The notes: a model not told the origin generated them from the sequence alone. 64,000 bases of DNA from Dimorphilus gyrociliatus (GCA_904063045.1 CAJFCJ010000007.1:926819-990818); one strand, 5' to 3'. Shown: positions 1,453 to 28,600, numbered from the stretch's first letter. A program made the numbers and translations.

Positions 1453-4400
1453 TCAACGATCCATTTGACGAGCTGAGTACATATCGGCCAACCGCTGGAA
1501 TCTAGGTCCCCATTCTCCCAAATAATCGTAGCAATGTTCGGTTTCGTCTGAAGCAGCTGTTGAGGCTAAGGACGAAAGTGAATCACAAACTGATCCCTCA
1601 CCCTCGTAAGCATACGGCCTAAGGCTGTCGTGTGGGGGAGCTGAGACGTCCTGATCCGCCTCTGCTACTCGAGCACATATAAAATCAGCTACGTCCGCTC
1701 CCGGTGGTGGAACACGTGGCTGTCTTCTCCTTGGAGGATATTCCTCATTCGGTACATCTATACTCTTTGGTTTTTGCATTTTCTTCAAGGGTATACTCTC
1801 TAATGACGGTTTATAAGCGTTTTGATCTTCATCCCCAACACCATCTTCTTCATATCGAATTATATTCTCTCTAACATCGTCGTCTGGATCAACTCCGTGC
1901 ATATATGTTTTACCATTGACATGGTTAGCTTTGTAATTGCGGTGTTTGTACCTAGAATAGACTATAAGGATGAGTATAATCACTAATACGGCTATTGCGA
2001 GAATGCAAAATATAATGCCAAATATTGCACCCGTCGTCATTAAAGAGCTATCCATAAGCTCTTGCCTATTACATTCTTCGCCGGTCCATCCTGGATCGCA
2101 ATCACATTTATAAGACCCTATGGTATTTCGACAAGTACCGTGGAGACCACAAGGTCGGAAGAGTGTTTCGCATTCGTTAATATCCGTACAAGTCGTTACT
2201 GATTCTTGCTTATAGGATTCGTATCCATCTGAACATAAGCACTTTCCAGCCCTCCACAAATCTTTACAATGTAAAGGATCTAAGCACATTAACTTTTTAC
2301 ATCCGTCACTTCTGCAATGATCTTTAATCTCATTTTCCGAAGCAATATATGCGGCGAGGTCACTCATGCTCTCTGAAGTGGTCATCTGGAGAGGTTCTCC
2401 ATCGTATCGAACGTCGTCAATGCAAGAATTTTGCAAATCATATTCAACGATTATTTCAAATTCTCTAGGAAATTTTACCAAACCACCAGCGAAAAAACTC
2501 CCCTGACTCAATAGGATATGAATACGGCCTGAAAAATGACGGTGGACCACGTGAATGTCATCTAAACTGAGCCAGACGTCCCCGGAGTACCGTTCCACTT
2601 TGGCTACATGCCAGACGCCATCTGCGACATCAACATCGTCAATCCTAACATTTTTCTCACCAGATCCAGCATTAAATTTAAATCTCAATCTCCCTCTATC
2701 AATTTCTAAGATTACGTATTGAGACTTGTGGATATTTGATGCCATCCATAAAACTCCTCTTGTGCTTCTTGTGCGGAACCTCAATTGCAGTAATGTGCGT
2801 TCAGTGAAGCGTCGAACAATTGACTCGTAGAATGAATCGGTGAATCGCCATTCGATAAAGCTCTTTTCTCCAAAATCTCTGACCATAGTAGGAGTTTGAC
2901 ACTGATTACCACGCCACCCAGGTTCACATTGGCACTTGAAGCTGCTCTTTATAAAAGATCCAACACATTTTCCATTTTTACCGCAGTAGCCTAGCTCATT
3001 CTCTGCTGTCCTACCGCAAACGGAATCCTCGCGATAGCAACCATCTTCGGCGTTTTCCTGTTTTCCAGTATCTCCAATATAAAGGTCATATAGTTTTCCG
3101 TTGTGCTGAAGCTCCTTGATGCATCCTTTAAATCCGTACTTATAAACCTGGTGCGGATATGAAGGTGTCCTGTGATCTGTAGCTCTTCCTCCTAATTGCA
3201 ACGGTGTATTAACATTTAGCAGTTTCATTGTACCGGGTAGTCGGGCGGATTGTTCGCAAATAGAGTTAACAACTTCGTTATCAAAATCATTTTTTTCACC
3301 AGTTAGCGCACGACAGGAATCAATAATGACCCGGACGAACGGATGCTCTATAAACGTATCTAATCGATGCCAATTTCCGTCATTCAACGTTTTACCATTG
3401 GTGAAATGGATTTTTGCTTCGCCCTGACCAAGGTTAACACGGACTTTTGGAAGCCCATCTACAAGTTCAATAATTACATAATCATTCGGTTCAGCATTTG
3501 ACTGGGTAGGCCCATTGTAAAGCAAGAGACCATCAGGTGAGGTAGTTATAAATTTGAAATTAATGTGAGATTTATCGCATTGTAGAAGAGGGCTGTACCA
3601 TGCGAAAGAAGATTGACCAGAGAAAGAATGAGCAGTCTGTTCACATCTTGGCCCATCAAATCCTTTGGGACACCGACACCTAAATCCTTTAACCTTTTTA
3701 TCGTATGGTTGAACGGGTACACACACTCCTCCATGTAAACAAGTATCGTATTCGCATCCTGTTTTTTCAAAAGATTTCTTGCATGCACAAATTGCTTTTG
3801 TGATGGCGTTTACCCCAATCATAGACGTCGTATTTGTATTGACCAAAAGAGGCCGTTCCTTATCGATTATTATCTTGTTAAAGCAAGCTTCTCCGCCGCA
3901 AACGTTTTCAGAAGAACATTCATCGACCGGAGATTGCAGAATTTTTACATTTAAAGACTTTTCTAAGTGCTCCCGATGTTTGTTGACCAATCCGTTTAAT
4001 TTCACAGGGGAGTACCATGGACTTCCGTGAGCCGCCCAGAAAACGTCAGTAGTACGAAAAAGTTTGTTGTGATTTTTAACACTGAATATTAGAACATTAT
4101 CGAGGGCTGTATTCACGACTGTGGCCAAGCGATGTCTCAGTTTATCATAAAGACTATATTGTCGACTAGAATCGTCCACTTTGTCAATCAATTCTTCGGC
4201 TGTTATTCCAGAGAGACGGATAGAGCCTGCAGAATCGACCGCCTCAATGGGAATATCGAGGATACGCACATGAGCCGTTGAAGTAACGCTTAAGTCCTTT
4301 CTGCGATCTAAAACTTTAACCTTTAACTTATAAAGGCCCTTTCCTAATGACTTTTTTAAGTTCAATTGACCCGTCCTTTTGTTCAGGCTAAATATCAAGA

Positions 4401-10400: not shown

Positions 10401-13400
10401 TTAATTGAATTTAACGATATAATTAACGTTTTTGCTTTTCAATTGAGCATGTCCTTCACTAATCGGTTAGTGTAATTGACATAAAGCTTTGGAAGGCTAG
10501 TGTAAACCCAGCGTGACTAGCTCAAAGCTAAAATTAATCTTACTTTGTTTATAAAGAGGCCGTTACCTAGGTGGCGTTACTGAAAGCAGTGGTCTTAAGT
10601 ATATTATCTATGATATTTAATACCCTTTATCTTAGAGAAAAGCACCACCCTCAGATGATATACCATGCATTAATCAAAAGTCCCATAAGCAAAACCAATA
10701 GTTAAGATATTAATGCTCTTAATTAGAAAAAGACATTTAGTTTCATTTAAATACTTCAATAAAATTGTCAATATTAATAGAAATTGGAATCAGAAATCCG
10801 TTAAATTGAGCGAGCTGTAAAATAAAGCCACAACATGAAAAATTAAACAAAGCAAGCACAAATTTACCTCGTTCATGAACTGAAAAAGATACGTCAAACT
10901 ATATCATAAAGGTTTTTGATAAAGTAATATAACGAAGGCGAGACAATCGCTGACTGTGACATTTACAATATTTATTATGTTAAAAGTCGTGCGAAAAAAA
11001 ACTGACAGAAATTGAATATAATTTCTATACATCTAAGACATTTTGCCTATTTCCTATTATTAATATAAGAGTTGTACCTGGAAAACTGGAGCTTCGTCGT
11101 TTATATTAATAACCTTAATTCGAACCATTGCCTCTCCCGACAATCGGGGATTTCCGTGATCCCTTGCTGTAATAGTAAAATTATAGACGTGGTTTGGCAG
11201 CCGGTCATAATCTAGTCGCCTGAATGGGAAAAAAAATGATATTTATTTATTAATATATACAGTCTTATATTAATGGTTGCGTATGGGGTATATTGTATAT
11301 AAGGACAATTTTCGGCTTTATCTGCTTGAGGATATTGGTTTCAAGATGCGTTTGAGCGGATAAAGTTTCGAATTAAAGCAAATGCTTAAAGGCATCTGAA
11401 TAGTTTTGACACCTTTCTCCTTGAAAGTGCACGCAAATATTTTGCTGCCTAATCCTTACGTTTGCAATTCGAGAAAGTGAATATTTATCTTTCGAGTAAA
11501 CAACAAAGACTTTATTCCCTTAAACCGCTTGATATTTAGGTAATATGCACAGAGTTATACGCTTGAAGACGAATTGTCTTTTATTTGTATGCCTTGGATA
11601 GTTTTAACTTACTATCTGCCAGTATTTACTTATGTACGCTATACTCTATTTATGAATCATAGAATGAAGTCTTTTAAGGCTCAGTCTGCGATAAAAAGAA
11701 TGTAACAACTTGTTGATAAACGTAATTTTAATGAACATTTTACGGTCAATAAATTCTTATTAATATTTAATGGTCGATTTGCTATTTTATACAATGTAAT
11801 GAATACTTACTCTTTTGTAACAATTCTGCCCATATTGTTCCTAGAGATCACACTGAAATTTGGGTCACTTACAGAATATTCTAATTGAGCATTCGTTTTC
11901 GAGTCGGCATCGTAGGCGGACACTGGAGAAAAAACAGCTTTGTACAAGAAAACATCAAAAGAATAGCGTAATTGCAGGGCAAAGAGACCCCAAGAGGGTC
12001 GTTATGCGTGCTTTTTCATCTGTGAAACACTTCGATACAGCGTTATAGTCAATCAGAGTTGGCCTTTTTTTGTGTTAACAAAAGTCAAAGAAGAATGGGG
12101 GATGAACTTACCCACAAGTATATTTTTCTTTAACTCAGCGTTTTCGAATACTGGTGGTGGCGTATATTGAGAAAGTGGAAAAATAGGCGAATTATCATTG
12201 ACGTCGATAAGTGAGACGATAAGAGATACTTGGCTAGTTCGAGGCGGACTAGAAGATTCCGTCGCCATTACTTTCATTACATACTTATGAGGATCCTTCT
12301 CGAAATCTAATGACTGCATTAACTTAACTGTACCAGTTGTTCGGTCTATAGAAAATTCTGTTGGATGTCTATTTTTTTCTGAGAATAGTTCGTAGGAAAT
12401 GCGCTCATTCTGGTGAGAAAAAGCCCTAACAACAATCACGACGTTTTGTTTGGGATCATTATGGTCAGTATTTTCTTTTATGCTGGCTTCGTACGAAGGT
12501 TCATAGAACTGAGGATCTAACGTTCCAACGTATATCGATAAGGCTTCAATATTAGATTTTTGCGTTTGATTTAACGGAGCAGATATATCCTGAGCTGAAA
12601 CGCCGATTTGATACATTTCAGCAGAAAAAACTCCGTCTCCGATGGTTGTGACAACTCCAGTAACTGGATCCAAAACGAATCGATCGTCACCACCTGTGTT
12701 GAAGAGGTGTATGAATAATAGTAAAATGACACTACACTATAGATGAAACGACGCCGCTTAATAACAGCGTAAACCCTCAAAATAGCTATCGAGCATTCAA
12801 ATTGCCGCCATAAAAGTCGGGGAGCAAACAATTGTCCATAAGAATGGGCTCTACAATTAAATATTTCAAGTTCAGGGCTGTCCTCTCCTATTACAGGGTA
12901 TTATTAACATTGTATCCTTTCTAAACTGTTCTTTTCCCCAGCTAAAATTAAATATTAACATGTCGAGCTTATTATTAATTGTCCATACTACTGCCCACTA
13001 CTCAAGAATTCAATGATGCAGAAATTTAACGATCAATACTGCCCAAGTTTAATGAAATCGTTCTATGGCGTGTATACTGCAATAGAAAATCTGTAAAAAG
13101 GGTCGAAGTCTTGTATGCTACTTTTAAACGATTAAGTGCACTCCTACACTAGCGCCATAGAGTTAATACACTTTTTCGCATCAATCAGCACGATTTCTAG
13201 TGGAAATTCATACTTAACGAATAAGCAAAACTATCATGGCTAATTATAAGTAAGTCTTTGCTAATTGTCGCGTGGTAAAAACTTTGCATGTCTGATAAAT
13301 ATTGGAGAATAAATTAGTGATAAATCGATTACAAGAAATAATTCTCTTTTTGACATAAGGTAATTCCCACGAAATTAACAAGATGCCGTCGTAATTCAGA

Positions 13401-16400
13401 CGAATAAAAGCGTTTGACAATTTTCACCTACCTGATTCCATCACGTATCTTATCTCAGAACCTCCGTCGGGATCTTCAGCCATAAGCTGATATACACTTG
13501 TACCCGGAGCTGCATTGTGAGGTACAGTTGCACGAAACGGATAGGGAGCATTTTTAAATACAGGAACTTCGTCATTTTCATCTTTGATAGTAATATAAAC
13601 TTCTTGATTGTCGAATACTGCAAATAAAACGTAAATGCATAAGTAATGAAGAATTTTTATTATTTATCATTGCAATAATTGTAACAGAATTTAATAATAA
13701 TTGATAAATTTTTGACAATTGGCTGACTCGCTTTGGGAAAAATCTAAAAAAAGCACAGTCACCTGCTTCCTTCAATATACTAGGGTACACAAAATACACA
13801 GGCGTCGTAAATCAAACAAAGTAACGCTTGCCGAACAAAGGCATCTGAGCGTCTAGTTTAACTGAGTTCCCCTTGGCACTGTTAATACACATTGTCTCGG
13901 AGAACAAAAGCCGTTTGAATAATGTTATCATTAAGCCGGTAAATTATTTAACGAACCGAATTCATCTGGTTTCTATAAGAGAAAAAAATCGAATGGTATC
14001 TATCCAATCAAATATTGTTTATACGATTCGAAAAGCTGTTTAACAGTGAGCTCAGCGCCTAACTTTACTCTGTTAGAACCACACTCTAGGCGAGAATTCA
14101 GAGAACAAGCTATACAGATGGTGTTGACACGTTCCATTGGTGTTTCCCGCAGTGTCAATCGTTCTTTTTCTCTGGATGAAATCGAAAGACGCGAAAAAAA
14201 TCGATTAACGGTACAGTAAAAAAAATACATATTTATTCTATAAAGAACAATCGAGTGCATACAGCCAATTTGCAGCAGACTCGGCGTGGCGCATTTCTAA
14301 CTCTGGGTCGACAAACGCGTGCAGTAGCATACACTGCTGCTGCAGTTACTGTAAGTCTGCAAAACTCTGCGTAATATCAAGCTGAGGGCGAACTTTTTCT
14401 CAAATAATTGGTAATAGGAGGAATAACTGCTCATCAATCTCTCACTTTAGTAAAAGAGGGGAGGACGGCTATTTAATTATCAATTACGGGATTACAGATA
14501 AACTAGATTGAGATTAATGATCGATTGCGTAATGAATAGAAGGGAAAAGAGAGCATCAATATCTCGGACAATAATAAGAAGGCAACAAGTTCTCTTAAGC
14601 ACTTATTTCTTGTATTTCGTAACTTGAGGCGAATCGCTCACGCATTTCGTTATAATATGTAGGTTAAGAGCGCGCAAAGTAAAGCTAGTTCATTAGTCAC
14701 CATAGAGACGGTCGCCGACGCCCGGTTGCGTAACGTACGAATTTCATTACTATGTCGAGTACGTTCGTACGAGCTCCTCCTCTTCAATACTGAACTTTTC
14801 ACCTCTTTGTTGTTTAATTAAAGTAAAGCCTTGCGCGAGAAAGGGTTGGCCGATAACGACCAGTAATAGCGCGTGTCACATTCTTATTATGCTGTTTACC
14901 TTTGGATTAACGGGTGAAAAAGAATAAGCGAGAATAATGATTATTTTCTCACATGCGAATACAGACGGCTCATTAGCCAAATATTAACAGCTTCTTCCTT
15001 TTCAATGTCAATGTAAGCGTCGGGAATCGGCAATTTAATAAGTCTGCTGTAACAAAAACAGGTGCCACATTATTGCAGTCGCATCAAAGGCGGTCATTCA
15101 GAGGTCATGGTCGTGACGCTACATAGAAAACGGAACCCCTGGGACTGCGCTCTCGGCACCTGTCTTTAGCAAGAGCATCTGAAATATCGATTATGCAGAC
15201 AATCCTTAACGCCCGAAATCCTACTACGCGCACGGCATAGACGGTGCATCGTTATCGATTTCTTTTTAACGCGACCGCCGTACAAAATCAAAGTGACGCC
15301 AGAGATTTCTGGACCGTAGCGCGAAAACAGCTAAGACAAAGTACCCACTTTCGTATGATATACGAAAAATTTAACGCCGTCGGCATCACTTACGCTTTCG
15401 TTACCATAGCAACTAGACGCCTACACTGGCAGCGCCACTGCGAAAAATCGCATGGAGGACATTTTCTACGCTAATTACGGAGAGCGTCACGTGATCTGAA
15501 TCGATCGCTGTTTCTATAGGTCAAAGGTGAACGAAGACTGCCCCAAAACAGGTCTCCCTTTAATGTATAAAGTAGAGAGGAACAAAGAGGTGCAATTTGT
15601 TAGAAGTATGTTTTCATCCAAATAGGATTGCGTAACTTGGTTCATTTGAATCGACTGCAACTTATGCAGACACGTGCTATAAACAGTTCATAACTAGTAT
15701 GTGGAAAGCAAATACTCTCGGACTCTATAAAATCTATATATATGTATCGATTTGTTTATACTCCCGCACGTGTCTACAAACATACCAAACACGTCCGATA
15801 GTCCGAGGATATCGATTCAAAACGGAAACATATTAATAAACTTTACTTACTGGAAGGTACACCCCTCTGAGATATTTTCACGGTGAAATTGATTGCTTTT
15901 TTTGTTTCATAATCTAGATAAGATTTCTTGGTTCTTTTGTCAATCTCAACAGATATTTTTCCTGTCATGGGATCAATGCTAAATTCTTTAGGAATCGGCT
16001 CAACAAACTGATACTGCTCCAATTCGGCATTTGTAGGTCTTAAATCAATCACTTCTCCAACATGAGTTTCGCTTATTACCTTTGTCTTTCTCTCTCTTGT
16101 TCCTCGTTTTGATCTTGAACGATCTCTCTTTTCGTTAGCTACCTTAAGATGGATATAGGAAGTACTGCTAGATCGACCAGTATCAGTGCTGGCGTGCACG
16201 GAAAGTAAATACTCCTCATTTTTAGTTAATCCTTTCTGTGCCAAGCGAACAGTACCTGTGTAGCTGTCTATTTCAAACAAAGAATGTTGAGGTCTGAGGG
16301 AATAATAAATTTTAACATCATCAGCGTCTTTTGCTCGCACAGTGATGATTTCACTTTTAATAGGAAGGTTTTTGGGAATGGTTCGATAATAGTCACTCTT

Positions 16401-17036
16401 CTCAAATACTGGTTCGTTGTCTTCTACATCATCAACAGCCACGATAATATCCGAAGAGGCCTCCAAGCCTTCTTCATCTAGATAAGCGAATATTTGAAAA
16501 TTATAAAGTTTTTTCTGCTCTCTATCGAGAGATTTTGTTGTTTTGATTGAGACGCAGCCATTTTCTCTGTGTAAGAAAAAGGAATGAGAATCCTTTTTAA
16601 GCAGTTCATACTTTATTCCGTCATTTTGATTACGATAAGAAGCGCAAACGTTCTCTAAGTTAGCAACAAGGCTATTTCTGGGCTCATTTTCGTAAATATG
16701 ACCAGCGTACACCGTCTGTGGGAAGACTAGCATATATCTAGCATCCTTTACTGTTATATGTAGCTCTTTGAACCAATTCCGACCATTCAATGATTTTCGA
16801 ATAATAACTTTAAAACTTTCGCCTTTAAGATGGCTTATATCTTCTATAATCCTAACAATTCCATCAGGAGAAATATCCACTCGACGACCTATATCCGAAT
16901 CGTGTATATAGAATTCCTCGCTCCAAGAGAAAGGGTATCTTATAACTTCATAACCGTAGCCGGCTGTATGCGGAACGTCTACTTGTTCGCAGAAAGTTCT
17001 AACAGCTAAAAATAGCAGCAAAGCGAGACGGTTCAT
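1453..17036 (-). CDS. CadN: Neural cadherin (DN-cadherin / type III classical cadherin), about 2987 aa, 10 coding exons
   Basis: Hand-spliced GT-AG exons with consistent phase: 17036-15851, 13617-13432, 12693-12112, 11922-11811, 11219-11078, 9723-6335, 5941-5835, 5761-5549, 4561-4450, 4387-1453 (8964 nt). Contains a signal peptide, an RSKR furin-like site and many EC repeats (DxNDNxP, LDRE, DxD). These are followed by a non-chordate domain, EGF-LamG-EGF-LamG-EGF, a TM segment (IFGIIFCILAIAVLVIILILIVY) and a beta-catenin-binding tail (YAYEGEGS...YDYLGEWGPRFQRLADMY). Confidence 0.93.
10868..10879 (-). other. Candidate 12-nt in-frame micro-exon (FMNE) in cadherin intron 5
   Basis: Minus strand reads tttgacgtatctttttcag|TTCATGAACGAG|gtaaat: branch-point-like TTGAC, pyrimidine tract, CAG acceptor and a good donor. 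The host intron is phase 0. Confidence 0.45.
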
Positions 17037-17320
17037 GAGCGATAAATGGCGAGAGGCGTCTAATTGCGTTTAGTCATTCGAAATTGTTCTTTTTACCGAA
17101 TAAAACAAACTTATCGTAGATTCTTTTATAAAGCAATCTTGAATATCCAACAATTTTCATTTCATGTATATATCCGGATAAAGAGGAAAAATTTAACAAA
17201 AAAAAATCTTCGTATCCTTTATTGTTCGTGCCGCGAACAGTGAGCGCACACTGCTTAGCTGCGCGCGGGTATAATTTACTCCCTTCTGGTGTTCCAGCGC
17301 ACGGCTACTCCCTCTTACAG

Positions 17321-17329
17321 CGCCATCTA
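17321..17329 (-). promoter_or_regulatory. TAGATGGCG(CTG) CTCF/YY1-like motif upstream of cadherin
   Basis: Exact copy of the recurrent 9-mer, about 285 nt upstream of the cadherin ATG. Confidence 0.5.
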
Positions 17330-17710
17330 TGATGTTTGGATGTTATATTTAATTAAAAAGAATGCTCTCTTTTTCGTCTACGTCAACTATTGAAATATAC
17401 ACTTTCATTAAGATCTCTTACACATAAATATTTATTTTCGTTAATACTATATATATATATATTATATGAGATAGCGAGAATTATATATTGTTTCTAAAAA
17501 ACAAAAGTAAGGCATCACTCCAAATGAAGCACGTATAAAAAAGAACTTGTAAACAAATGAATAAGTTTAGCATTCTAAAAGTACAAATATAAGCAAGCAC
17601 GTAAAAAGCTCAGGTGAAATAGATAAAGGTAATAAGATTGGGTTAGAGATAGATAAACTATGTCCATACGAATTCCAAAGAGTATTGACAACAAGCAAGA
17701 GTAGGATTAT

Positions 17711-20700
17711 TTATCCGGATTTCGTTTGATGTAGAGCCTGTATAATATATATACATATATAAAAAGTTTTAGTAATAGATTTATAAGACATAAAAAAACT
17801 ATAAATTTACCAAATGTATATTTAAAATACAATAAAATTAGAAATGTGCTTGCTTAAAAGAGAGTGTTAACTTTCACTCATTAACAATATATGGAAACTA
17901 TCATAATAAATAATTGCTGAATAATAAAAAAAAATAATGAAAATAGTAGATGAAAGATTTTCTATCTTTATATTTATGATTAAGAAAATAGGCCAATTAA
18001 AATATCTATATTCTATATAAATAGTAATTAACTTTTGTAAGAGAAAAAAGGAAATTTCTTTTTTTTATATGTTGAACGGATTTGATTGATTTTTTTTTAT
18101 ATATATATATTTAGGTGTAAAAAACCTATTAATTTTATATTTTAATATGATAAATAATTGAATAGATGGAGAAAACTTTATCAGAAAAATATATTATAAA
18201 AATAGAATAGTTATACAAACCGTTGTAATATCGACACCAGTCATAGATTTAATAACTTTGGGTAACTTTTCTACAATATCTATAACTTCTTCAGTCAGTT
18301 TGGATGCGCCCACTTCGCTGTTTCCGCTGGAAACCATAACTACTTTTTTGGTTTTTGTCAGCGGTTGCGCAATTTCTTCAGCAACTTTTGGCAGCGTTTC
18401 AAGCATCATCTCCACAAGAGCAGCATCCTTGTATTCTTTCCAAGCTTCCGCTTTCTTCGCCATCTGCTCAGCTTCCGCCTTAGCTTTTACCTGTATAGCG
18501 TAAGCTTTTGCTTCACCCTTTATTCTAATCGATTCGGACTGGGCCTGTGCTTCGAGTACAACTCTACTCTTATTAGCAGAGGCAATTTTCTCTAGACGAT
18601 ATCTTTCGGCTTCGGCAGGCTTTCTAACTGTGGCGTCTAATTCTCTCTCCCGTCTTATAATTTCCTGTTCTTGAACGTGAATCTCTCGATCTCTTTCAAT
18701 AACCTCGACCTGTTTATTTTCCTCTCTACATTTGATAAAAAGAGGATTATTGTAATAACGCTAAAAGCTTTATAGGAGATTAAACTTACCTGATTAGTTG
18801 TTTTGTTTTAGCAGCTTGAAGACTATAGCTTAATTCAGATTTAGCTTTCTTTCCTTGAATTTCCATATCATATTCAGCATTTTTAATCTTAAAGTCCCTT
18901 TCCGCCTTAGCAATGTCGATATCATTCTTATAGCGAGCAGCCATTTTTAGTTCGTTTGCTTCTGCTTCCTGTTTTCGAGTAATATTTATATTTAATAACG
19001 AGTTTTACATGGAAGCGTAAAGAACAGATAGGAGAAAAACGGTTTCCAAATGATTTTAGGTATAAATTATTGCGTAGCATTAGGCTTTGGGAATCATACA
19101 AATAAAATCAAGAGTTGTTGAGTTGTCCAATCATTTATTTTTAACTACTTAAAAACAAGTTTTTTAATATTTACACGAAATCTATCCACTTAATTATTTA
19201 CACACACATCTAGAAGCTCGTAGTGATAAACAATTCTGTTGCTTAATATCTAATTATTGCTTCAAATGTTGTACGGTATCAGGAACACTTTATTATAAAC
19301 TATATGCGTACAAGGGGAGACTATTCATATTATATTAATTAAAAAGTATTTAAGAAATACAAGATATTTCTTTATAATCGTGATTTTTAGAATACAAGCG
19401 TGGAAAAAATCCCAGAGAAAATATTATATCTTCATTACATTAGTCATTAAAACAGCTGCGTCGGCAAGTGTTTTTCTGATACACAATTAGCAAAGTACCA
19501 ACACGATTAAATATTCATAGTTACTTTAATATAACTATCTCAATAGGTGCTGGCAATGGGATCTATTTTATGGAAAATAGAAACCTTCTTTTTTAAGGAA
19601 GTAAATTACATTCACAGCTATTTCTCTCTTACAGATAGGAAAATGCCTTCAATCCTTACAATTAATAAATATATTGACTAGTTAATAACAAATAACAGCA
19701 TCTTATAACTAATATCATTTTCTCGCTTTTCCGGAGCAAAACACTTTTCCTTACAGGAAATTCATTCAGAGGAATAATCCAATTAGAATGAATGACATTG
19801 ACTACAGGCGAGAGAGTACTATTGACTAAGAAAATTCTTTCTAAGCCTATTGGTCATCAGAATCACTTATCAAGGCAATATATTTACTAGGTGATACTAT
19901 TACAAATTGTATAATCAATTTGGATATGTCAGAGCTTGTTTTTAAAAATTGAAAGAAATCAAATATTAATTGTTATTGGCAAAAAAACCGGATAAGATAC
20001 AAGTAATTATACTTAATTAGATAAAAAGAACATTCGATATATTATTTTAAGACTAAGACTATAATCTTAAGATTTGTTTGTTATATTTTTTACTTATCAA
20101 AGATTGGTATGTCGCATGTAGTACTCACTGTATACAGTATACTCAAGCACTAATCTAAAGATAATAGGATAGTTTTCTTTTCTTAATAATATAATCAAAT
20201 TTAATTAGTTCTATACAAGACTGGTAATTTGCACCGTTTTATCTACTAACAGACAATTTTGTAAATCTTATTAAAATTTAGTTTAGTTTTCTTTTACAAT
20301 GTCAGCTGGCTGTCATTCACTTTAAACAGCGTTTCAATCAAGTATTCTGTGTGCTGCTGGTCAACATATCTTAAAAAATAGAACTCCTTATTAAGTGTAG
20401 TGATTGACGCTGAAAACTATTCTAAACAAGAAGTTACTAAATAACTGAAAAATACATTTTGTTTTCAACTCAACACTCTGTAATAGTAATATATCTTATT
20501 TCCATTCATTTAGCATTGTAAGCTTAGTTTTGAATGGTCGTTTTTTATTGATGATGGCGTAAACAGATTCTTAAGCTCTGTAAAATTCTATTTCTAATTT
20601 GTGTCATTCCATTGACCAGGCTAATGATAACTTTGTTAACTAAGTACAGTAATAAGATTAATTGGGATTAATGAAATATTTATATACTCTCTATATAAAA

Positions 20701-22952
20701 TACTTTTACAGCGATTTTCAAAGATTAAATTTAGTTTAAAACATTATTTTTACTAATATGTCACCTTAATTGTGGCATCTCTAAGAGCTTCAGCTTCACC
20801 GATTTTAGCGTCACGTTTAACTTGAGCCGTCCTGGCCTGACCCAAGGCTTTCAAGTAGCCCTAAGAAGCAAGAAAAAACACAAAAATTTTATACAACAAA
20901 TCTAGGCAAATCAAAAAAGCAATAGTATAGCAAAAAAAAAATAAAACGTATGGTGGTGGACTTAATTTTAAGGAAAAAAAACTAGACTTTAATGGCAGCG
21001 TCCCTCCTCGAAATAGCTTCCCCTATTAAAGCATCTCTTTTAACTTCAGCTGTTCTTTTCTTTCCTAAACTTTCGATATAGCCCTGTATAGTTTTGCTAA
21101 AATCTTAAAAAATGCATTTATTATATAATTTATAAATTTTAAATGATGTTTATAGTTTATCGTTAGATTTCTTTGCTAAGAATAAAACATTAATTAAGAA
21201 TAACAAAATTCTATGAGAAAAAAAATAATTCAACATTAAACGTATAGATAATATTACCTCGTCGTCTCGAATATCTTTGATAGTGTAACTGACAACCATA
21301 ATTCCCATTTGGATCAGATCGGACGAGGCTTCATCGAATACTGATTTCGAAAACTTTTTTCTGTCCTTGTATATTTCCTAGAATGAGGGGGAAAACGAAG
21401 ATTTCATTAATATTAAATCTTCCTGTTGGACAGAAAAGGCGGAAAATGAAGTCCCTAATAGATGAAAATTTGCTCTAGATATAATTTACAAAATGACTGT
21501 AATCTATCATCTATTAGAAACAATGTTTTAACTACTTGCAGGAGAATTTACAAAGCAAAAATAATGAATGAAAAAAAATTTAGAAGCTGGCTGACACACC
21601 TCCACTGTCATGTTACCCATAATTGCTCTTTGATGACCTTCCAGGGTTTCTTGGGAGATTGAAGCAACTTCTCTTTCAGATTTTCCAAGAAAGTGTTGGC
21701 AGGCTGCCTCTAACATGTCTCTGTTACTTCCCTGAATTTTTACCTGAAATATTTTGGATGCAGTAGACAAAAAAAGACAGCTATAACTAAAGAAGGGTGG
21801 AATTGAACACGAACGACGGAAAACAACAAATTTGTCGAGCAATTGGCACCTTGACCGACATATTTCCCATTATAGCTCGTTGATGTCCTTCAAGAGTTTC
21901 TTGGGCTATTTTTCTAATTTCAACATCAGGTTTGCCAAGAAATAGCTGGCAAGCAGTTGCTAGCATGTCACGATTTTGACTGTGAATCTTGACCTTAATT
22001 AGTGCCAATTATTTAATATAACAATTGCCGATATTTTTGTTGTAGAGTGTAGTTCAGCGTAATAATAATTAAAATTAGTTTAAAGATAGTATACAGTATA
22101 TACCTGAGCAATGCCCGTAACTGATACGGCAACGCCATGTTGTGTGTAAACTTGAGGCGATTCAATCGTCAGAGTCATGGTATTCAGGGATATTCTGTGG
22201 ATGAATGATGTTCATTAGTTATAATTCAAGTTTACAGCTTTTATTGTATTTATAGTATATAGTAATTTCTTTAATAAAGATCTTGTTGGTATTATAGTCT
22301 AATTAAAAACAAAGTATGTGCATAGCATAGCAAAATTCTTATCAGTGGGAAAATATTAGTAGTAGCTTTAAGTTAGAGATTTGGAAAATATGAATCATAA
22401 TATCGAATTTAGAGTTTGCAAGAGAATTTTACCTCTGAATCTGTTGTATTATCGGCCAAACGAAGACTCTCCCTCCTGGCACCAATTGGGGTCGATCTAG
22501 GCAGCATCCTCCTGTACAAATTAGAAAAATTGTTCGTTAGATTGTTTTGGTCGAATTTCAATTTAAAAAAGCCTCTTTATTGTACCCGATTTCACCAAAA
22601 CTTCGTTAGGACCACTAGAATGACAACACATACATTGGCCCATTTTTGCAAATAGTATTGATAAGCAATGAACCCTTTATGTTTAATGTAACCTCGGTTA
22701 AGAAAATAAGTATTGAAATGATAACAGAATAGTCTGGTTGTGAAACGGATTACTCCATATAAGCTGAAAACCTGTTTATATATTGTTTGATGGGCAGCAT
22801 GATAAGAAAACAGGTATTTTAACAGTTTATCTTGAAGAAACCGATAATACTATCGCGCCGCCATGTTGTTTAAATATTTGAGCATTTTTAGACGATTTCC
22901 TACCTGAAACTACCATTGCTTCATTGGGACCGCAGACATGGAAAAGAGGCAT
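17711..22952 (-). CDS. FLOT1: Flotillin-1 (SPFH + flotillin domain), about 430 aa, with three duplicated exon pairs
   Basis: Exons: 1a 22952-22904 or 1b 22643-22586; 22511-22433; 22194-22104; 4a 21993-21850 or 4b 21743-21600; 21377-21258; 6a 21083-20988 or 6b 20860-20765; 18968-18790; 18725-18221; 17737-17711. FLOT1-diagnostic motifs: [47 protein letters not shown]. Confidence 0.93.
20765..20860 (-). CDS. FLOT1: Flotillin exon 6b ([32 protein letters not shown]), 96 nt
   Basis: cttag|GGC...AAG|gtgaca; phase 0-0; paralogous to exon 6a. Confidence 0.88.
20988..21083 (-). CDS. FLOT1: Flotillin exon 6a ([32 protein letters not shown]), 96 nt
   Basis: tacag|GGC...AAA|gtctag; same length and phase as 6b; open frame; weak donor. 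Confidence 0.8.
21600..21743 (-). CDS. FLOT1: Flotillin exon 4b ([48 protein letters not shown]), 144 nt
   Basis: ttcag|GTA...GAG|gtgtgt; phase 0-0; visible within ORF 21528..21842. Confidence 0.88.
21850..21993 (-). CDS. FLOT1: Flotillin exon 4a ([48 protein letters not shown]), 144 nt
   Basis: ttaag|GTC...AAG|gtgcca; same length and phase as 4b; visible within ORF 21787..22008. Confidence 0.85.
22586..22643 (-). CDS. FLOT1: Flotillin alternative first exon 1b ([20 protein letters not shown])
   Basis: ATG at 22643; ends TCG G|gtacaa (phase 1), which joins exon 2 in frame; GPNE motif conserved. Confidence 0.78.
22857..22868 (-). promoter_or_regulatory. YY1-like motif CAACATGGCGGC between flotillin exons 1a and 1b (candidate internal promoter)
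   Basis: Near match to the YY1 consensus CAARATGGCGGC, in a CpG-rich patch about 215 nt upstream of the exon 1b ATG. Confidence 0.45.
22904..22952 (-). CDS. FLOT1: Flotillin alternative first exon 1a ([17 protein letters not shown])
   Basis: ATG at 22952; ends TCA G|gtagga (phase 1); matches the canonical FLOT1 N-terminus [11 protein letters not shown]. Confidence 0.88.
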
Positions 22953-23845
22953 CTTATTGTAGGTTAATGATATCTTGTTTAAGAGATGATTTATAAATAT
23001 GTAATATTTGGGAAAAATTTAGTAAGGAAAGGGGTCAAGGACAGTTTGCGTCATCTAGTGGGCAAAAAATTTCAGAATAAATTTGCTCCATATTCCATAC
23101 TTATACGCCATCTGTATCAATGAATACTATAGCAGCTTAGTAGCAGGGAGAGAGAAAGAGAGAAAGGTAAAGAAAAATCGAAGAATAAGAAGTAAGAATA
23201 TTTAGAAAACATTTTCGCTGTATTCTCTAAAATATATCAGAACAACATCTGGTAAAACAATATACTACAGAAACGACACAACTTATACTGAGCAAAATTT
23301 TCCATTTTTTTTCCCTACCCCAAGCTTTCTCAAAAAATTGTTCTTATTGAGTTCTATTTACTTTTTTTGCCCTGTAATTGTTATTTTATTCCCCTATTTT
23401 CTCCCCTCTCCCTTCCAACAAGAAAAAAACATTTCATTTTCACAGCAAAAAACGTGCCAAAATGTATAATAACTATTTGACATAATTTTACCATTATTCT
23501 ATCCTTTTTCCGAAACAAACAAGTTCCTCTTCTCCTTCAAATCCTACTTTTGTTTATTCATTATGAAAAATTTATGAAAAAATATAAATCTTTTATTTAT
23601 ATTTTATATTTTTTTAAAAAAAAAAATAATAAAAAATAAGATTTTGATTTATTGTTTTTGTTTATTAACTTCATTATTATTATTATTATTATTTAGCTGT
23701 AAATAACAAGTTATTTTCCCTTTTCTTTTCCGAATAGGAAAATTGAACGGAAGGATAAAAAAATGGTAAAAAAATCGAAAATAGTAAGCCGATACCATCC
23801 CTACCCTGAGGGGGACTTTAAAACGATTTCTCTTTTCTTTTATTT

Positions 23846-25594
23846 TTAAAGTAAATCCGTAACATTGTTCTTCGAACCGAACACTTTAGCTAATTGCTCT
23901 TCATAGGCTGCTGCATTTCTCTTCATAATATCCTTGCAGGGTCCCAATAACCGCGTAAAATCGTCTCTTGGTAATTTTGCCACCCTAGTCGATCCGACTG
24001 CGATGACCGTTGCTGCTCGAGGTTGGTCAGTGATAAGAGCTAATTCTGTTGATAGAAATTCAGGAATCGTAAAAAGCTTTCCACACGAAATTGAAAGTGA
24101 TTTGAGTATTTAAATAAAACTGTTTTAAATCATCTTAACTATTTAATCAGAATAAAAATAGTACGTTTTATATCTTTCTTATAGTGAGACGTTAATGACA
24201 ATGTAAACACAAGTAAATCTATTAACTATAAATAGTATAAACTACATACCTCCAAAATAGCCTCCCGGTTGCACCCTGCTAACTTCTTTCTGTTCCGCTT
24301 GATGCTATTAAAGAAAGAGTATTTCCTTTTATAATGCGAAGATTGGAAGAAAGAGAAACCTCTTAAAAAACTTACAGCCTGCTTAACCAGGCACCTGACG
24401 GCGCCCTTTTCAACGAAGTACATAGAATCCGCCTCATCATCCTGTTTTATAATCACTTCACCATCTAAATAATCTTTACTTTGTAATGCGTAAGCCACGT
24501 TATTTCGTTCATAAAGCGTCAATTCCTGGAAGAGAGGAACCTTTTGCAGAAGATCTTCATACTGCTTTAATTTTAAATGAGTAGATTTGATAACTATCCT
24601 TCTAAATGTTTGTCTGTCCATAGCCCATAGCTTGCCAGCGGTTTTTGATAGAATACAAACTGCCCTGGGAGTATTATACATCAAGGCTAATTCTCCAAAA
24701 AAACCTTCATTATCATAAATCTTTGGAGGTTCTGTTTCTTTAAATTCACCATTCTCTTCACTTAACCGAAAAGCAGCAAAGACCCCCTTTTCCACAACAT
24801 ACATATAGTCGCCGTCGTCATCCTCTTTAATTATAACTTCTTCGGGACCTTCGACAACCTTTTCAAACATAGCATCAATAAGCTGTTCCATTTGCTCTGT
24901 ATCTAAATGTCTGAAGTAGAAGCAGTTTTGAAGCGTCGCCTTAAGACGTTGTCGTTGAGAATCAGTTTTTGGATAGACTGTCAAAGGCGTCTCATCCGTA
25001 TCAGTTTCGGGGTCATAGCGTTCGGCAGCAACTGATTTACGTCGACCTACTGTTCTAGCTGGACCTAAAAAGAGAGATAAAAACGAATGTGAGTAGGAGG
25101 AGGAACAAAGCATTTTAACAAAAAAAAAATTGAAAAGAAAAAAGGGTAGAAGGAAAGAAAAGAACTAGAACGTTGAACTTTCTAATTGAGGTTGCAGGCG
25201 TTACTTATTCTTTGTTATACTTATATATGCTTTTGGCACGTTTTTTTCAATAGCGAAGGGCTACAAAAACTCGGATATTTAGAACGGACTTTAATAGCGA
25301 TACTTAAACAACCCTTAATGTAATTCATATACTATACTAAAACTAGGTTTAGAATTTCTAATTACAACATCAACTACATAATGAAGTTTGCTTTATACAA
25401 TCTTTCTCTTTATAATATTTTATGCGGCTCATATTCTAATTCAACTTTAAAAGAAATATATTCATTAAGAAATCTCCGCCTTCATATTCTATAAATAAGT
25501 TAATTACTGCTCATTACAAAATAACATATATACATATTTCTATATGCTGAGCTAAGCGAAAATAGATGTTTTCCAAAATGTTTACAAATAAATT

Positions 25595-25628
<34 letters not shown>

Positions 25629-28600
25629 CTGTATATACTTAATTAATTTTATTTATATATTTCTATTTACCTCTATAAATACCAAAAAACAGTATACAGG
25701 ATTATCTTTGATATATCCCACATAAATAGTATATAAGAGGGATAAAAATTAACTATCACCCTCAGTTTCTTACTCCCCCTCAACGCCATAAATATACGCT
25801 GTATGCAAATTGTATATAAATATAGGCTTACATTGTCTTCCTGAACTCTACTGCTAAAACGGTGTATAAAATTTCAATCCGTATTACTGGAATTACAGCC
25901 GCAAATAGACTTGCAGTTTTTTTTTTATTTTATTTTTTACTTCTTGCGCCTTTCGAAATTCACCTTTCATGTTGAAGGATTTTCGTATTTTAATCCTCTT
26001 GAAAGAAATGTAGTAAGTAAGACTTGTCTCGAGGATACAGAAAAATTGGGACAATTTTCAAACTTGTCCTTCCTGCCGTAAAACTCCCTTACAGCTCAAT
26101 CTACCTTCATTTCCGTTCCTATTTATAGGTAATGAAAAACGTCCAATGGTATATACGAAAAAAAAAGAGCGTCACCTACTCAATGCCGACGTCACTTCGA
26201 ACCGAAAAAAACGTACGTGCGACATATAATAATGAAAGAGTATATCTTCCACATCTTCCAATCAATATATACATAGGTACTCATGTAGACGAACGTATCA
26301 TTCATAAATTTATTCAAGTTCAACTTTGATAGCAATATTTTAAAGGTTATGGGCTTATTATTCGCTGCTTTTGTTCGACAATTGTTCGATATATCTAAGC
26401 AATAGCTTACCGTTCTCACCATTTACTATATTATAATCGGTCCGTCGGCGCTGTCTCATAAAAGCGCCTAAAATAGTTGCCGCTACGGTGCTTATACAAT
26501 CCGCAACCGACGCCATCTTCTACAGTAATTAGTCGCGATTTTCAACCAGGAGAGAATATTGCAGATGCGTGTACAAACGTCGACATCTATCGATTCGACA
26601 GAAACGCTCGCAGCGTCACCTCGTATCGTATAAACGAGGTTTACGGGCATGCATGAGAGATATTGGGTGGCTTTTGATCAGTAAAAAAACAGTATTACCT
26701 GTATAGCCTTTTATTCTACCTATTTTGTCAGATGTCTACAAATTATTGAATAGGATGCGCTACATTTGCTACAAGCATGCAATGTATTTAATATTAGGTT
26801 ATAAATATTTATAGTTACATATAATAAACTATTGTACTGTGATATAAAGTCTATAAACTGTAAATGAAGAAAATATGTATATTCTAGTTTGCACCAGTGT
26901 TACCAACTACGTTTGTCACGATATGCAGCTGGAAAAATTCTAAAATTAAGCACGTATCCCTTCAAGATGCAACTAATTCCATAGTCTTGGCCTATCTTGC
27001 ATACTCGAATGAGCGATACTGGTAAAGATAAGTGCATAGATGAATTATAATAATTTTATGAATATTGTATCTCTTTTAGCACCCAACTAAAGCAAACAGT
27101 TATTAGATCTATAGTAAAAAAAAGACTGGAAATTATATAGATCAATTTTTCTCCCTCTTCTCTTCTTTATTCCCTCGATTTCTTTTTCTAAAATTGTGCT
27201 TTTTAATAAGACAAAAAGTTCCGTCGATCATTAAATTGCTCTCTTAGTAGATTGACAGCTTTAAATTTTTTAACAAAAATATATTAGCCTCTTTTTATAT
27301 GCGTTAAAACATTGCAGATTGTCTCAATTAGAGAATTATCACGTGATGTGGGCAGTAATTTACATCAAAGTCTGATTTGACCTTTTTTATCAGATGAATT
27401 TCACGCAGACAACCTGTTAAATCACGATTGTAGGTGTCGCTATCTTAGAAGTTTAAGAAGCTCTGTAGATTTTCTGTATTGCCCATAAAAGGTCAAGCTG
27501 AACTCGAATGTCTATAAACCATGAATGTTGTCGATACTACAAACTAGAGAAGTTGACAATTTGTCACGTTTTTAAAAAAAACCTGACAAACACATTTGAA
27601 GTAAAGAAAAAAAAAAGACTACTCATGATTAACTTCAAACTGTGATTTTTTTTTCTAAAATATAAATACAGCTATAAGACAAAAAGGATGGTAGTAATTA
27701 GATTAAATTACGTAATATTACATAATTAGAGAGTATGAATAAAGTACATTTTTTTGTAAAATTGAAAGGCATCATAATAGAAATACCCATTTACTATTAT
27801 ATTTAATTAAACTATCATTTATAGAAAAATAGAGGAGTAGGAGGAGTAGGGATTAGAGGGAAGGGTTAGAAGACTGGCAGAGTTGTGTGAAAAGAGGACA
27901 GAAAATATCCAATTAATAAAATTAATAATATGCTTTTTTTATTAAAAAAATAAATATTAAATACTTTCTTTGCATACAAAGCTAAATTTTATACTTTGAA
28001 TATGAAAGTTTACAAAATAAATAACAATACTATAATGTTTCATTGTTAATTCCCATTTTCAAATCAATAGATTTTAATATTTTTAAAATCAGTCAGGTTA
28101 CTTTGTTTTTCTTAAATTATTAATCACAATTGTAATGAGAAGTCATGAAATTTCTAACAATTTCCTTACTTGTGCATTTTGTATCCATTTATTAGACTAG
28201 ATCCAGTCTTCGCTGCGTATTTATCTTATAGGCCTTATGTCGCCTTCTGCATGCTGATTTTATATTGATCACTGCTAAAACCTTATTATTTATCCAACCG
28301 TACTAACAATTGGATTAGTAAGAATAGATTAAATATCTAAAGCTAGTGGCCTTTCTTATTCGTACGTGATAATATACGTACTGTATTTATAAAAAATACG
28401 GTATTTTTTAGCATACTATAAGATCTACATGCAAATCTATTATTTGAATATAAACTAAATACCGAAAATGGTATAGACAGTATGTTGATAAATACTAATA
28501 CTTTATAATTCATGTTTAATCTTGACAAAAAATTTATTTTGAGTGTTGAAGCATGTTTCTTTCTTCTTATCCTGCCCTTTTATAACGGGATAATAAGCTA

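Follow-up and report, generated by a model that had tools for sequence, protein, structure and literature searches.

An alternative first coding exon very probably gives flotillin-1 of Dimorphilus gyrociliatus a second, flotillin-2-like membrane anchor

Flotillin-1 (FLOT1) and flotillin-2 (FLOT2) differ mainly in their mode of membrane attachment. In FLOT2, Gly2 is myristoylated and Cys4, Cys19 and Cys20 are palmitoylated, and in FLOT1 Cys34 is palmitoylated (PMC7177705). A choice between such attachments has been described for KChIP, in which alternative 5' exons lead to myristoylated, palmitoylated, transmembrane or cytosolic forms (PMC3973911). Here we describe the flotillin-1 gene of Dimorphilus gyrociliatus, a minute marine annelid; the gene appears to offer both the flotillin-1 and the flotillin-2 type of fastening through its first exon. 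All coordinates are positions in a stretch of 64,000 nucleotides (nt), CAJFCJ010000007.1:926819-990818 (GCA_904063045.1), hereafter the window. The gene lies on the minus strand of the window, as do its exons, the YY1-like motif and the promoter-proximal elements of exon 1a described below, and runs from 22952 down to 17711 with nine exon positions, three of them duplicated (1a/1b, 4a/4b and 6a/6b). We conclude that exon 1b very probably serves as a genuine alternative first coding exon and switches the membrane anchor; that it has its own promoter and that its product is acylated are the predicted parts of this reading.

A preliminary description of the locus had proposed two alternative first exons for this gene, and the exon anatomy bore this out. 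Exon 1a (22904-22952, 49 nt) has an ATG start and encodes 16 residues plus a split G; exon 1b (22586-22643, 58 nt) likewise has an ATG start and encodes 19 residues plus a split G. With phase 1 and a G/gt donor at their ends, the two fit one and the same exon 2 acceptor, tacag/GAGGATGC at 22511, and both were kept in a related species. Exon 2 (22433-22511), common to the two, encodes the split G, 25 residues and a split R, and after splicing to it the 1a and 1b proteins both read ...SGGCC. The two first exons are homologous, with GPNE.(M/L)V..SG in common and an identical phase. They are of unequal length (49 vs 58 nt) and both are 5'-terminal, which sets them apart from mutually exclusive tandem exons of equal length, a class to which the 4a/4b and 6a/6b pairs, as homologous neighbours of equal length and phase, do belong. 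The GGCC at the start of exon 2, which had been likened to the SGGCC of FLOT2, is present as claimed, but invertebrate flotillin-1 normally has CC after VVSG, and the pair is therefore not a special FLOT2 trait. A NAGNAG-like shift of 3 nt was also observed at this acceptor (cagGAG/GATGC, window 22506-22514), where D. gyrociliatus reads SGGCC and the related sequences L081 and L086, both introduced below, use a site 3 nt inward and read SGCC.

The N-terminus encoded by exon 1a is the canonical one of flotillin-1, with 15 of 17 residues as in an annelid flotillin-1 (Ridgeia). Exon 1b encodes Gly2 and three nearby cysteines, Cys4, Cys6 and Cys7, a predicted motif of the N-myristoylation and palmitoylation type, and the resemblance to the FLOT2 anchor that had been seen in it was upheld. 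As in vertebrate flotillin-2 (reggie-1), the layout is MG.C, then GPNE.LV.SG and a CC pair, with the same fit to the NMT pattern, and the 1b peptide is closer to the FLOT2 N-terminus (10 of 20 residues) than to that of FLOT1 (7 of 20). The myristoylation check suggested at the outset gave a positive outcome: GQCMCC fits PROSITE PS00008 (G-{EDRKHPFYW}-x(2)-[STAGCN]-{P}) both in the window and in L081, as vertebrate flotillin-2 does, and exon 1a and the MGFE heads of molluscs fail. Unlike vertebrate flotillin-2, however, the Dimorphilus gene is a flotillin-1 by every other exon, its 1b anchor is optional because it is carried by an alternative exon, and there are three cysteines, rather than one, in the first seven residues. 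The likeness of 1b to FLOT2 looks convergent, acquired after duplication of exon 1a. The start codon of 1b has an optimal context, with A at -3 and G at +4. A second start at Met5 had also been raised; the ATG is present in frame, but its context is poor (T at -3 and T at +4), so its use is speculative. As in KChIP, then, one core receives a membrane motif picked by the 5' exon, although the protein families are unrelated and the KChIP 5' exons, which are experimentally documented, are not tandem duplicates. The position of the vertebrate FLOT1 Cys34 (window 22445-22450) holds Ile in D. gyrociliatus and Gly in relatives; these worms lack the anchor site that vertebrate FLOT1 has there.

Comparison with a related species indicated that exon 1b has been maintained. 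The contig L081, a 22-kb genomic sequence that encodes the protein fragment P0001 and was reached via it, carries the orthologous locus, colinear with the window and about 70-75% identical to it at the nucleotide level. Frames and splice sites are preserved in L081 for all 11 exons checked, among them the members of the three duplicated pairs. Identity to L081 was 86% in exon 1a, 38% and 52% in the first and second halves of the 1a-1b intron, 79% in exon 1b, 55% in the 1b-2 intron, 71% in exon 2, 50% in intron 2 and 84% in exon 3. Exon 1b lies at 755-812 of L081 with its ATG, phase and G/gt donor intact; 12 of 57 bases have changed and 2 of 19 residues, and in 200,000 trials with 12 changes placed at random, no outcome free of stops had so few replacements (P<5e-6). 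Exon 1a, at 481-529 of L081, has seven nucleotide changes and one amino acid change (P=5.6e-4 under random substitution). The MGQCMCC head is unchanged between the two sequences despite four synonymous changes, and conservation of 1b begins at the ATG, which in-frame stops precede by 12 codons in the window and by 4 in L081. Because replacements are few among the changes and conservation holds from the ATG on, the 1b peptide is under purifying selection, as is that of 1a, and exon 1b is a coding exon maintained by selection in the two species. Word searches of protein databases found no 1b-type head in dinophilids. The flotillin-1 of a more distant species, P0284 (JGI contig, 428 aa), has a 10-residue stretch in common with 1b, no Cys-rich head and no partner isoform; it hints that a 1b-type exon may predate the MGQCMCC motif.

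No single mRNA can hold the two first exons in one reading frame, and a separate 5' end is therefore required for each. The stop-free stretch before 1b has only one AG, and a splice from the 1a donor to it would throw 1b out of frame and into an internal stop; read-through from 1a ends after 41 codons. An mRNA containing both exons was ruled out on grounds of frame. That the 1b 5' end comes from spliced-leader trans-splicing was also ruled out, given the report that D. gyrociliatus has neither trans-splicing with spliced leaders nor operons (PMC7854359). In an RNA contig of a third relative, L086, the 5' untranslated region (UTR) is at least 113 nt long, unspliced and colinear with the genome, and as the leader of this relative's 1a is of that kind, 1a lies directly behind its own start site. 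For 1b, the simplest reading places a further start site inside the 1a-1b intron; a shared start with alternative splicing is possible.

A YY1-like promoter motif had been assigned to exon 1b. The motif, AACATGGCGGC at 22857-22867, is an intronic element between 1a and 1b, 214-224 nt ahead of the 1b start codon, and matches AANATGGCGGC, which we take to be the YY1 consensus. It is the only match in the window, in which an 11-mer with at most one mismatch is expected 0.17 times, and it aligns with ACAATATGGCCG in L081 with 10 of 12 bases kept, an island in the intron half that is 38% identical. The motif was thus found as described and is partly conserved, but it is not significant alone, since 16 of 100 shuffles give at least one match, and its role as a promoter element is a prediction. 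The hexamer ATGGCG occurs three times as often in the window as expected (36 vs 11.2 +/- 3.4), and AGATGGCG-type copies occur upstream of 1a (23113), upstream of a cadherin gene (17328) and in the intergenic region at 30.9-31.0 kb. Copies of (T)AGATGGCG(C), including those at 17328, 23113, 26518, 30964, 31000, 51838, 55293 and 59707, are mostly on the gene strand and near 5' ends. According to the genome paper, a CTCF-like motif is the commonest in promoters (PMC7854359); the AGATGGCG-type copies may represent such a CTCF-like promoter motif or a YY1-type site. This pattern of motifs supports a regulatory role for the YY1-like element, short of establishing a promoter.

Exon 1a has promoter-proximal elements at 23034-23061, where CCACTAGATGACG (23061-23049), a variant of the AGATGGCG type, adjoins the conserved AACTGTCCTTGAC (23046-23034). 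These elements align with AAGATGGCGC...AACTGTCCTTGAC in L081, and AACTGTCCTTGAC falls in the first 30 nt of the L086 5'UTR. Farther upstream, a noncoding block at 23197-23301 is 86% identical to L081 127-233, with surroundings of about 62% identity; it is situated 245-350 nt upstream of the 1a ATG and about 60-100 nt beyond the point where a PKA regulatory-subunit gene is inferred to be polyadenylated. An Rfam scan of 22400-23900 gave no match.

RNA contigs were available from three runs, of which X1 and X2 are marine metatranscriptomes and X3 is a D. gyrociliatus run that looks like RNA-seq, with an exon depth of 2000-3000 and an intron depth of 30-76. The contigs confirmed the joints 2-3, 3-4b, 4b-5, 5-6b, 6b-7, 7-8 and 8-9; joint 2-3 was present in all three runs and the series 3-4b-5-6b-7 in X1 and X3. 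The 5-6a joint was minor, found in X3 only at a depth of 278 vs 2030, and exon 4a had a depth of about 290. In the third relative, two RNA contigs (L086 and L087) contained the full canonical mRNA, 1a-2-3-4b-5-6b-7-8-9, including the junction of 1a to exon 2. One X1 contig of 710 nt passed unbroken through five junctions and stopped at 22512, after the single G that is common to 1a (…CAG) and 1b (…CGG); a branch between 1a and unspliced sequence would share three letters (CAG) and stop at 22514. The end of this contig is suggestive, as an indirect hint, of a branch between 1a and 1b, and we gave it little weight.

Several observations weigh against the use of exon 1b as proposed here. The contigs of the three runs leave 22625-23022 uncovered, and hence 1b, its upstream region and 1a are all without a contig. 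The end of the X1 contig is ambiguous, as X1 is a mixture of at least two strains and one mismatch lies close to the end of the last piece. In the third relative, the flotillin-1 database forms derived from RNA use only 1a. A TATA-like sequence upstream of 1b was not kept in L081, a start near the YY1-like motif would place several upstream ATGs in the 1b leader, and the predicted myristoylation of 1b is based on a pattern match only. The hole in coverage over the first exons is, however, technical and not biological, because in X3 even exon 2 shows only as 30-nt overhangs, short pieces between branch points being apparently missing; it is uninformative for the use of 1b rather than negative. 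Exon 1b, if used, may be a minor form or be limited to a stage, sex or cell type.

On balance, we consider it fairly probable that exon 1b is a functional alternative first exon with its own start site, giving a myristoyl/palmitoyl form of flotillin-1. This explanation builds on the exon anatomy, the homology of 1a and 1b, the conservation of 1b, purifying selection and the fit to the acylation consensus, and it predicts transcription of 1b, a junction between 1b and exon 2, a separate promoter and acylation of the product. Exon 1b would have been born by tandem duplication of exon 1a. Transcripts from 1a would yield the canonical flotillin-1 N-terminus, which has no Gly2, and palmitoylation of that form would therefore be limited to Cys7 and the exon 2 CC pair. 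Transcripts of 1b would most likely start in the 1a-1b intron near the conserved YY1-like motif and join 22586 to 22511 with the phase unchanged. Their product would start with MGQCMCC; removal of the initiator Met would allow N-myristoylation of Gly2, and Cys4, Cys6 and Cys7 would become substrates for palmitoylation, the outcome being a dual lipid anchor of the flotillin-2/Src type on a flotillin-1 body. With alternative anchors of this kind, the choice of first exon would therefore set how, and probably where, the subunit binds the membrane.

It seems unlikely that a single promoter upstream of 1a serves both exons, with 1b reached either when the 1a donor is skipped or when the 1a leader is spliced to a site shortly before 1b. 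Exon 1b would then have no promoter of its own, and the protein outcome would be unchanged. The RNA contigs give no start site for either first exon, the 1a leader of at least 113 nt in the relative has room for a leader donor, and the YY1-like motif falls short of significance when taken alone, all of which are compatible with such an arrangement. Read-through from 1a, however, would put an upstream open reading frame of 41 codons before the 1b ATG, and translation of 1b would therefore be poor; for the spliced version, no acceptor upstream of 1b is position-conserved between the window and L081, and in RNA contigs of the relative the 1a leader follows the genome without interruption. We find it quite improbable that 1b is used with Gly2 left unmyristoylated, the Cys-rich head acting via palmitoylation only or via metal or redox chemistry, possibly from Met5. 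Such a head would be in keeping with the evidence for acylation being a pattern match alone, and also with the many mollusc flotillin-1 proteins that start with MGFE... and fail PS00008, because of which Gly2 in this family does not itself imply myristoylation. Against it stand the invariance of all seven residues of MGQCMCC across four synonymous changes, the permitted residues Gln3 and Cys6, the optimal start context of Met1 as opposed to the poor one of Met5, and a layout like that of the FLOT2 and Src-family anchors.

That exon 1b is an unused relic of the exon duplication (a pseudo-exon) or a chance reading frame we judge extremely improbable. Exon 1b is without RNA contig coverage, it is unannotated, and no 1b-type form occurs among the database proteins of relatives, all of which would fit a relic; yet two species with introns close to saturation have both preserved its ATG, reading frame, phase and donor, synonymous changes are in excess (P<5e-6), and the coverage hole equally affects 1a, which is certainly used.

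Duplicated exons are known from public flotillin-1 records of other spiralians. The NCBI flotillin-1 isoforms of Lingula anatina, Haliotis and Mytilus (isoform sets P0276-P0283, P0310-P0337 and P0303-P0365, respectively) are of equal length and differ in blocks corresponding to exon 2, 3 or 6. Clusters of exclusive exons were observed at exon 2 (Lingula, two variants), exon 3 (three to five variants) and exon 6 (two variants). Of the two exon-6 variants in molluscs, one is of the Dimorphilus 6a type and the other of the 6b type, and because of this match the exon 6 duplication seems to be older than the split of annelids and molluscs. These are internal exclusive exons, whereas 1a and 1b are unequal in length and require a 5' end each. 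None of the approximately 150 flotillin-1 proteins surveyed, including the Lingula, Haliotis and Mytilus isoforms, had an alternative first coding exon. A metagenome scan with exon 4b returned 80 loci, among which there was no close relative and none with two first exons in the available sequence; five genomic metagenome loci with a first exon had no second one downstream as far as the exon-4 match. Two loci from marine metatranscriptomes, L052 and L068, resemble flotillin-1 in exon 4 (75% identity), and their head is MGNCATS, with Cys4 and the myristoylation consensus. Unlike in Dimorphilus, the contigs of L052 and L068 show a single N-terminus each, with no sign of a switch. In the literature searched we found no description of duplicated or alternative flotillin exons, and flotillin is not mentioned in the Dimorphilus genome paper and its supplements.

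Exon 1 is the fifth exon position with duplicated exons in spiralian flotillin-1 genes. If the proposed switch is true, this gene would be a natural and genetically simple system for the part played by the myristoyl/palmitoyl head in targeting and assembly of the flotillin cage. A further idea, which we regard as very doubtful, is that the dinophilid flotillin-1 gene may supply both subunits, a canonical one (1a/4b/6b) and a myristoylated one with several palmitates (1b, perhaps in coordination with 4a/6a) that would take over FLOT2-like anchoring in the cage, so that a hetero-oligomer would be formed from splice forms of one gene. Exons 4a and 6a are of the flotillin-1 type rather than the flotillin-2 type.

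The identity of the gene body was examined with the exons searched singly, the full-length queries being natural database or locus sequences. Exon 8 (18221-18725) scored 31.9 bits against PF15975 (cutoff 27), indicating that the flotillin C-terminal domain is present. For the SPFH/Band 7 domain, exon 5 alone gave E=0.003, below the cutoff, and the annotated model of 226 aa, which covers exons 3-6, carries PF01145. Exon 8 was closer to human FLOT1 (179.8 bits) than to FLOT2 (123), and exons 4a, 4b, 6a and 6b all scored higher against FLOT1 than against FLOT2. The gene body is therefore not an ortholog of FLOT2, and the FLOT2 likeness is limited to the 1b head.

The public annotation was compared over window 11194-25944, which is identical to CAJFCJ010000007.1:938012-952762. 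It breaks flotillin-1 into two models, one of 226 aa (window 22178-20753) and one of 228 aa (DgyrCDS5824, 18944-18194). The 226-aa model begins at an exon 3 Met and is as long as expected if 4a is followed by 4b and 6a by 6b; DgyrCDS5824 spans exons 7-8; and exons 1a, 1b and 2 are outside every annotated gene model. A search of representative proteins with exon 8 found no full-length protein from the same species, and it was the source of the fragment P0001. The anatomy given here corrects the public gene model, which currently consists of two fragments without the first three coding exons and with duplicated copies in tandem.

The remaining exons were placed as follows. Exon 3 (22104-22194) is constitutive here, with joints 2-3 and 3-4b in RNA contigs. 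Exon 4a (21850-21993, 144 nt) is the derived copy of its pair, with an X3 contig over 21797-21995, and exon 4b (21600-21743, 144 nt) is the canonical copy and the one found in joined RNA contigs. Exon 5 (21258-21377) is also joined in RNA contigs. Exon 6a (20988-21083, 96 nt) is a minor form that is kept in L081 and matches one mollusc exon-6 type; exon 6b (20765-20860, 96 nt) is the major form, with joints 5-6b and 6b-7 in X1 and X3. Across the two pairs, 4b and 6b are the copies closest to other flotillin-1 proteins, 4a and 6a are derived, and all four are kept in L081. Exon 7 (18790-18968) is joined in RNA contigs. An X1 contig departs from the locus at 18203 into TATAAACGGGGTTTTGGGGTTTTGGG, a G4T4 repeat resembling a ciliate telomere, and is probably chimeric. 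The last coding exon (17711-17737) encodes ALHQTKSG and the stop, an X2 contig joins 18220 to 17736, and in the third relative this exon ends in ALQQSKSG.

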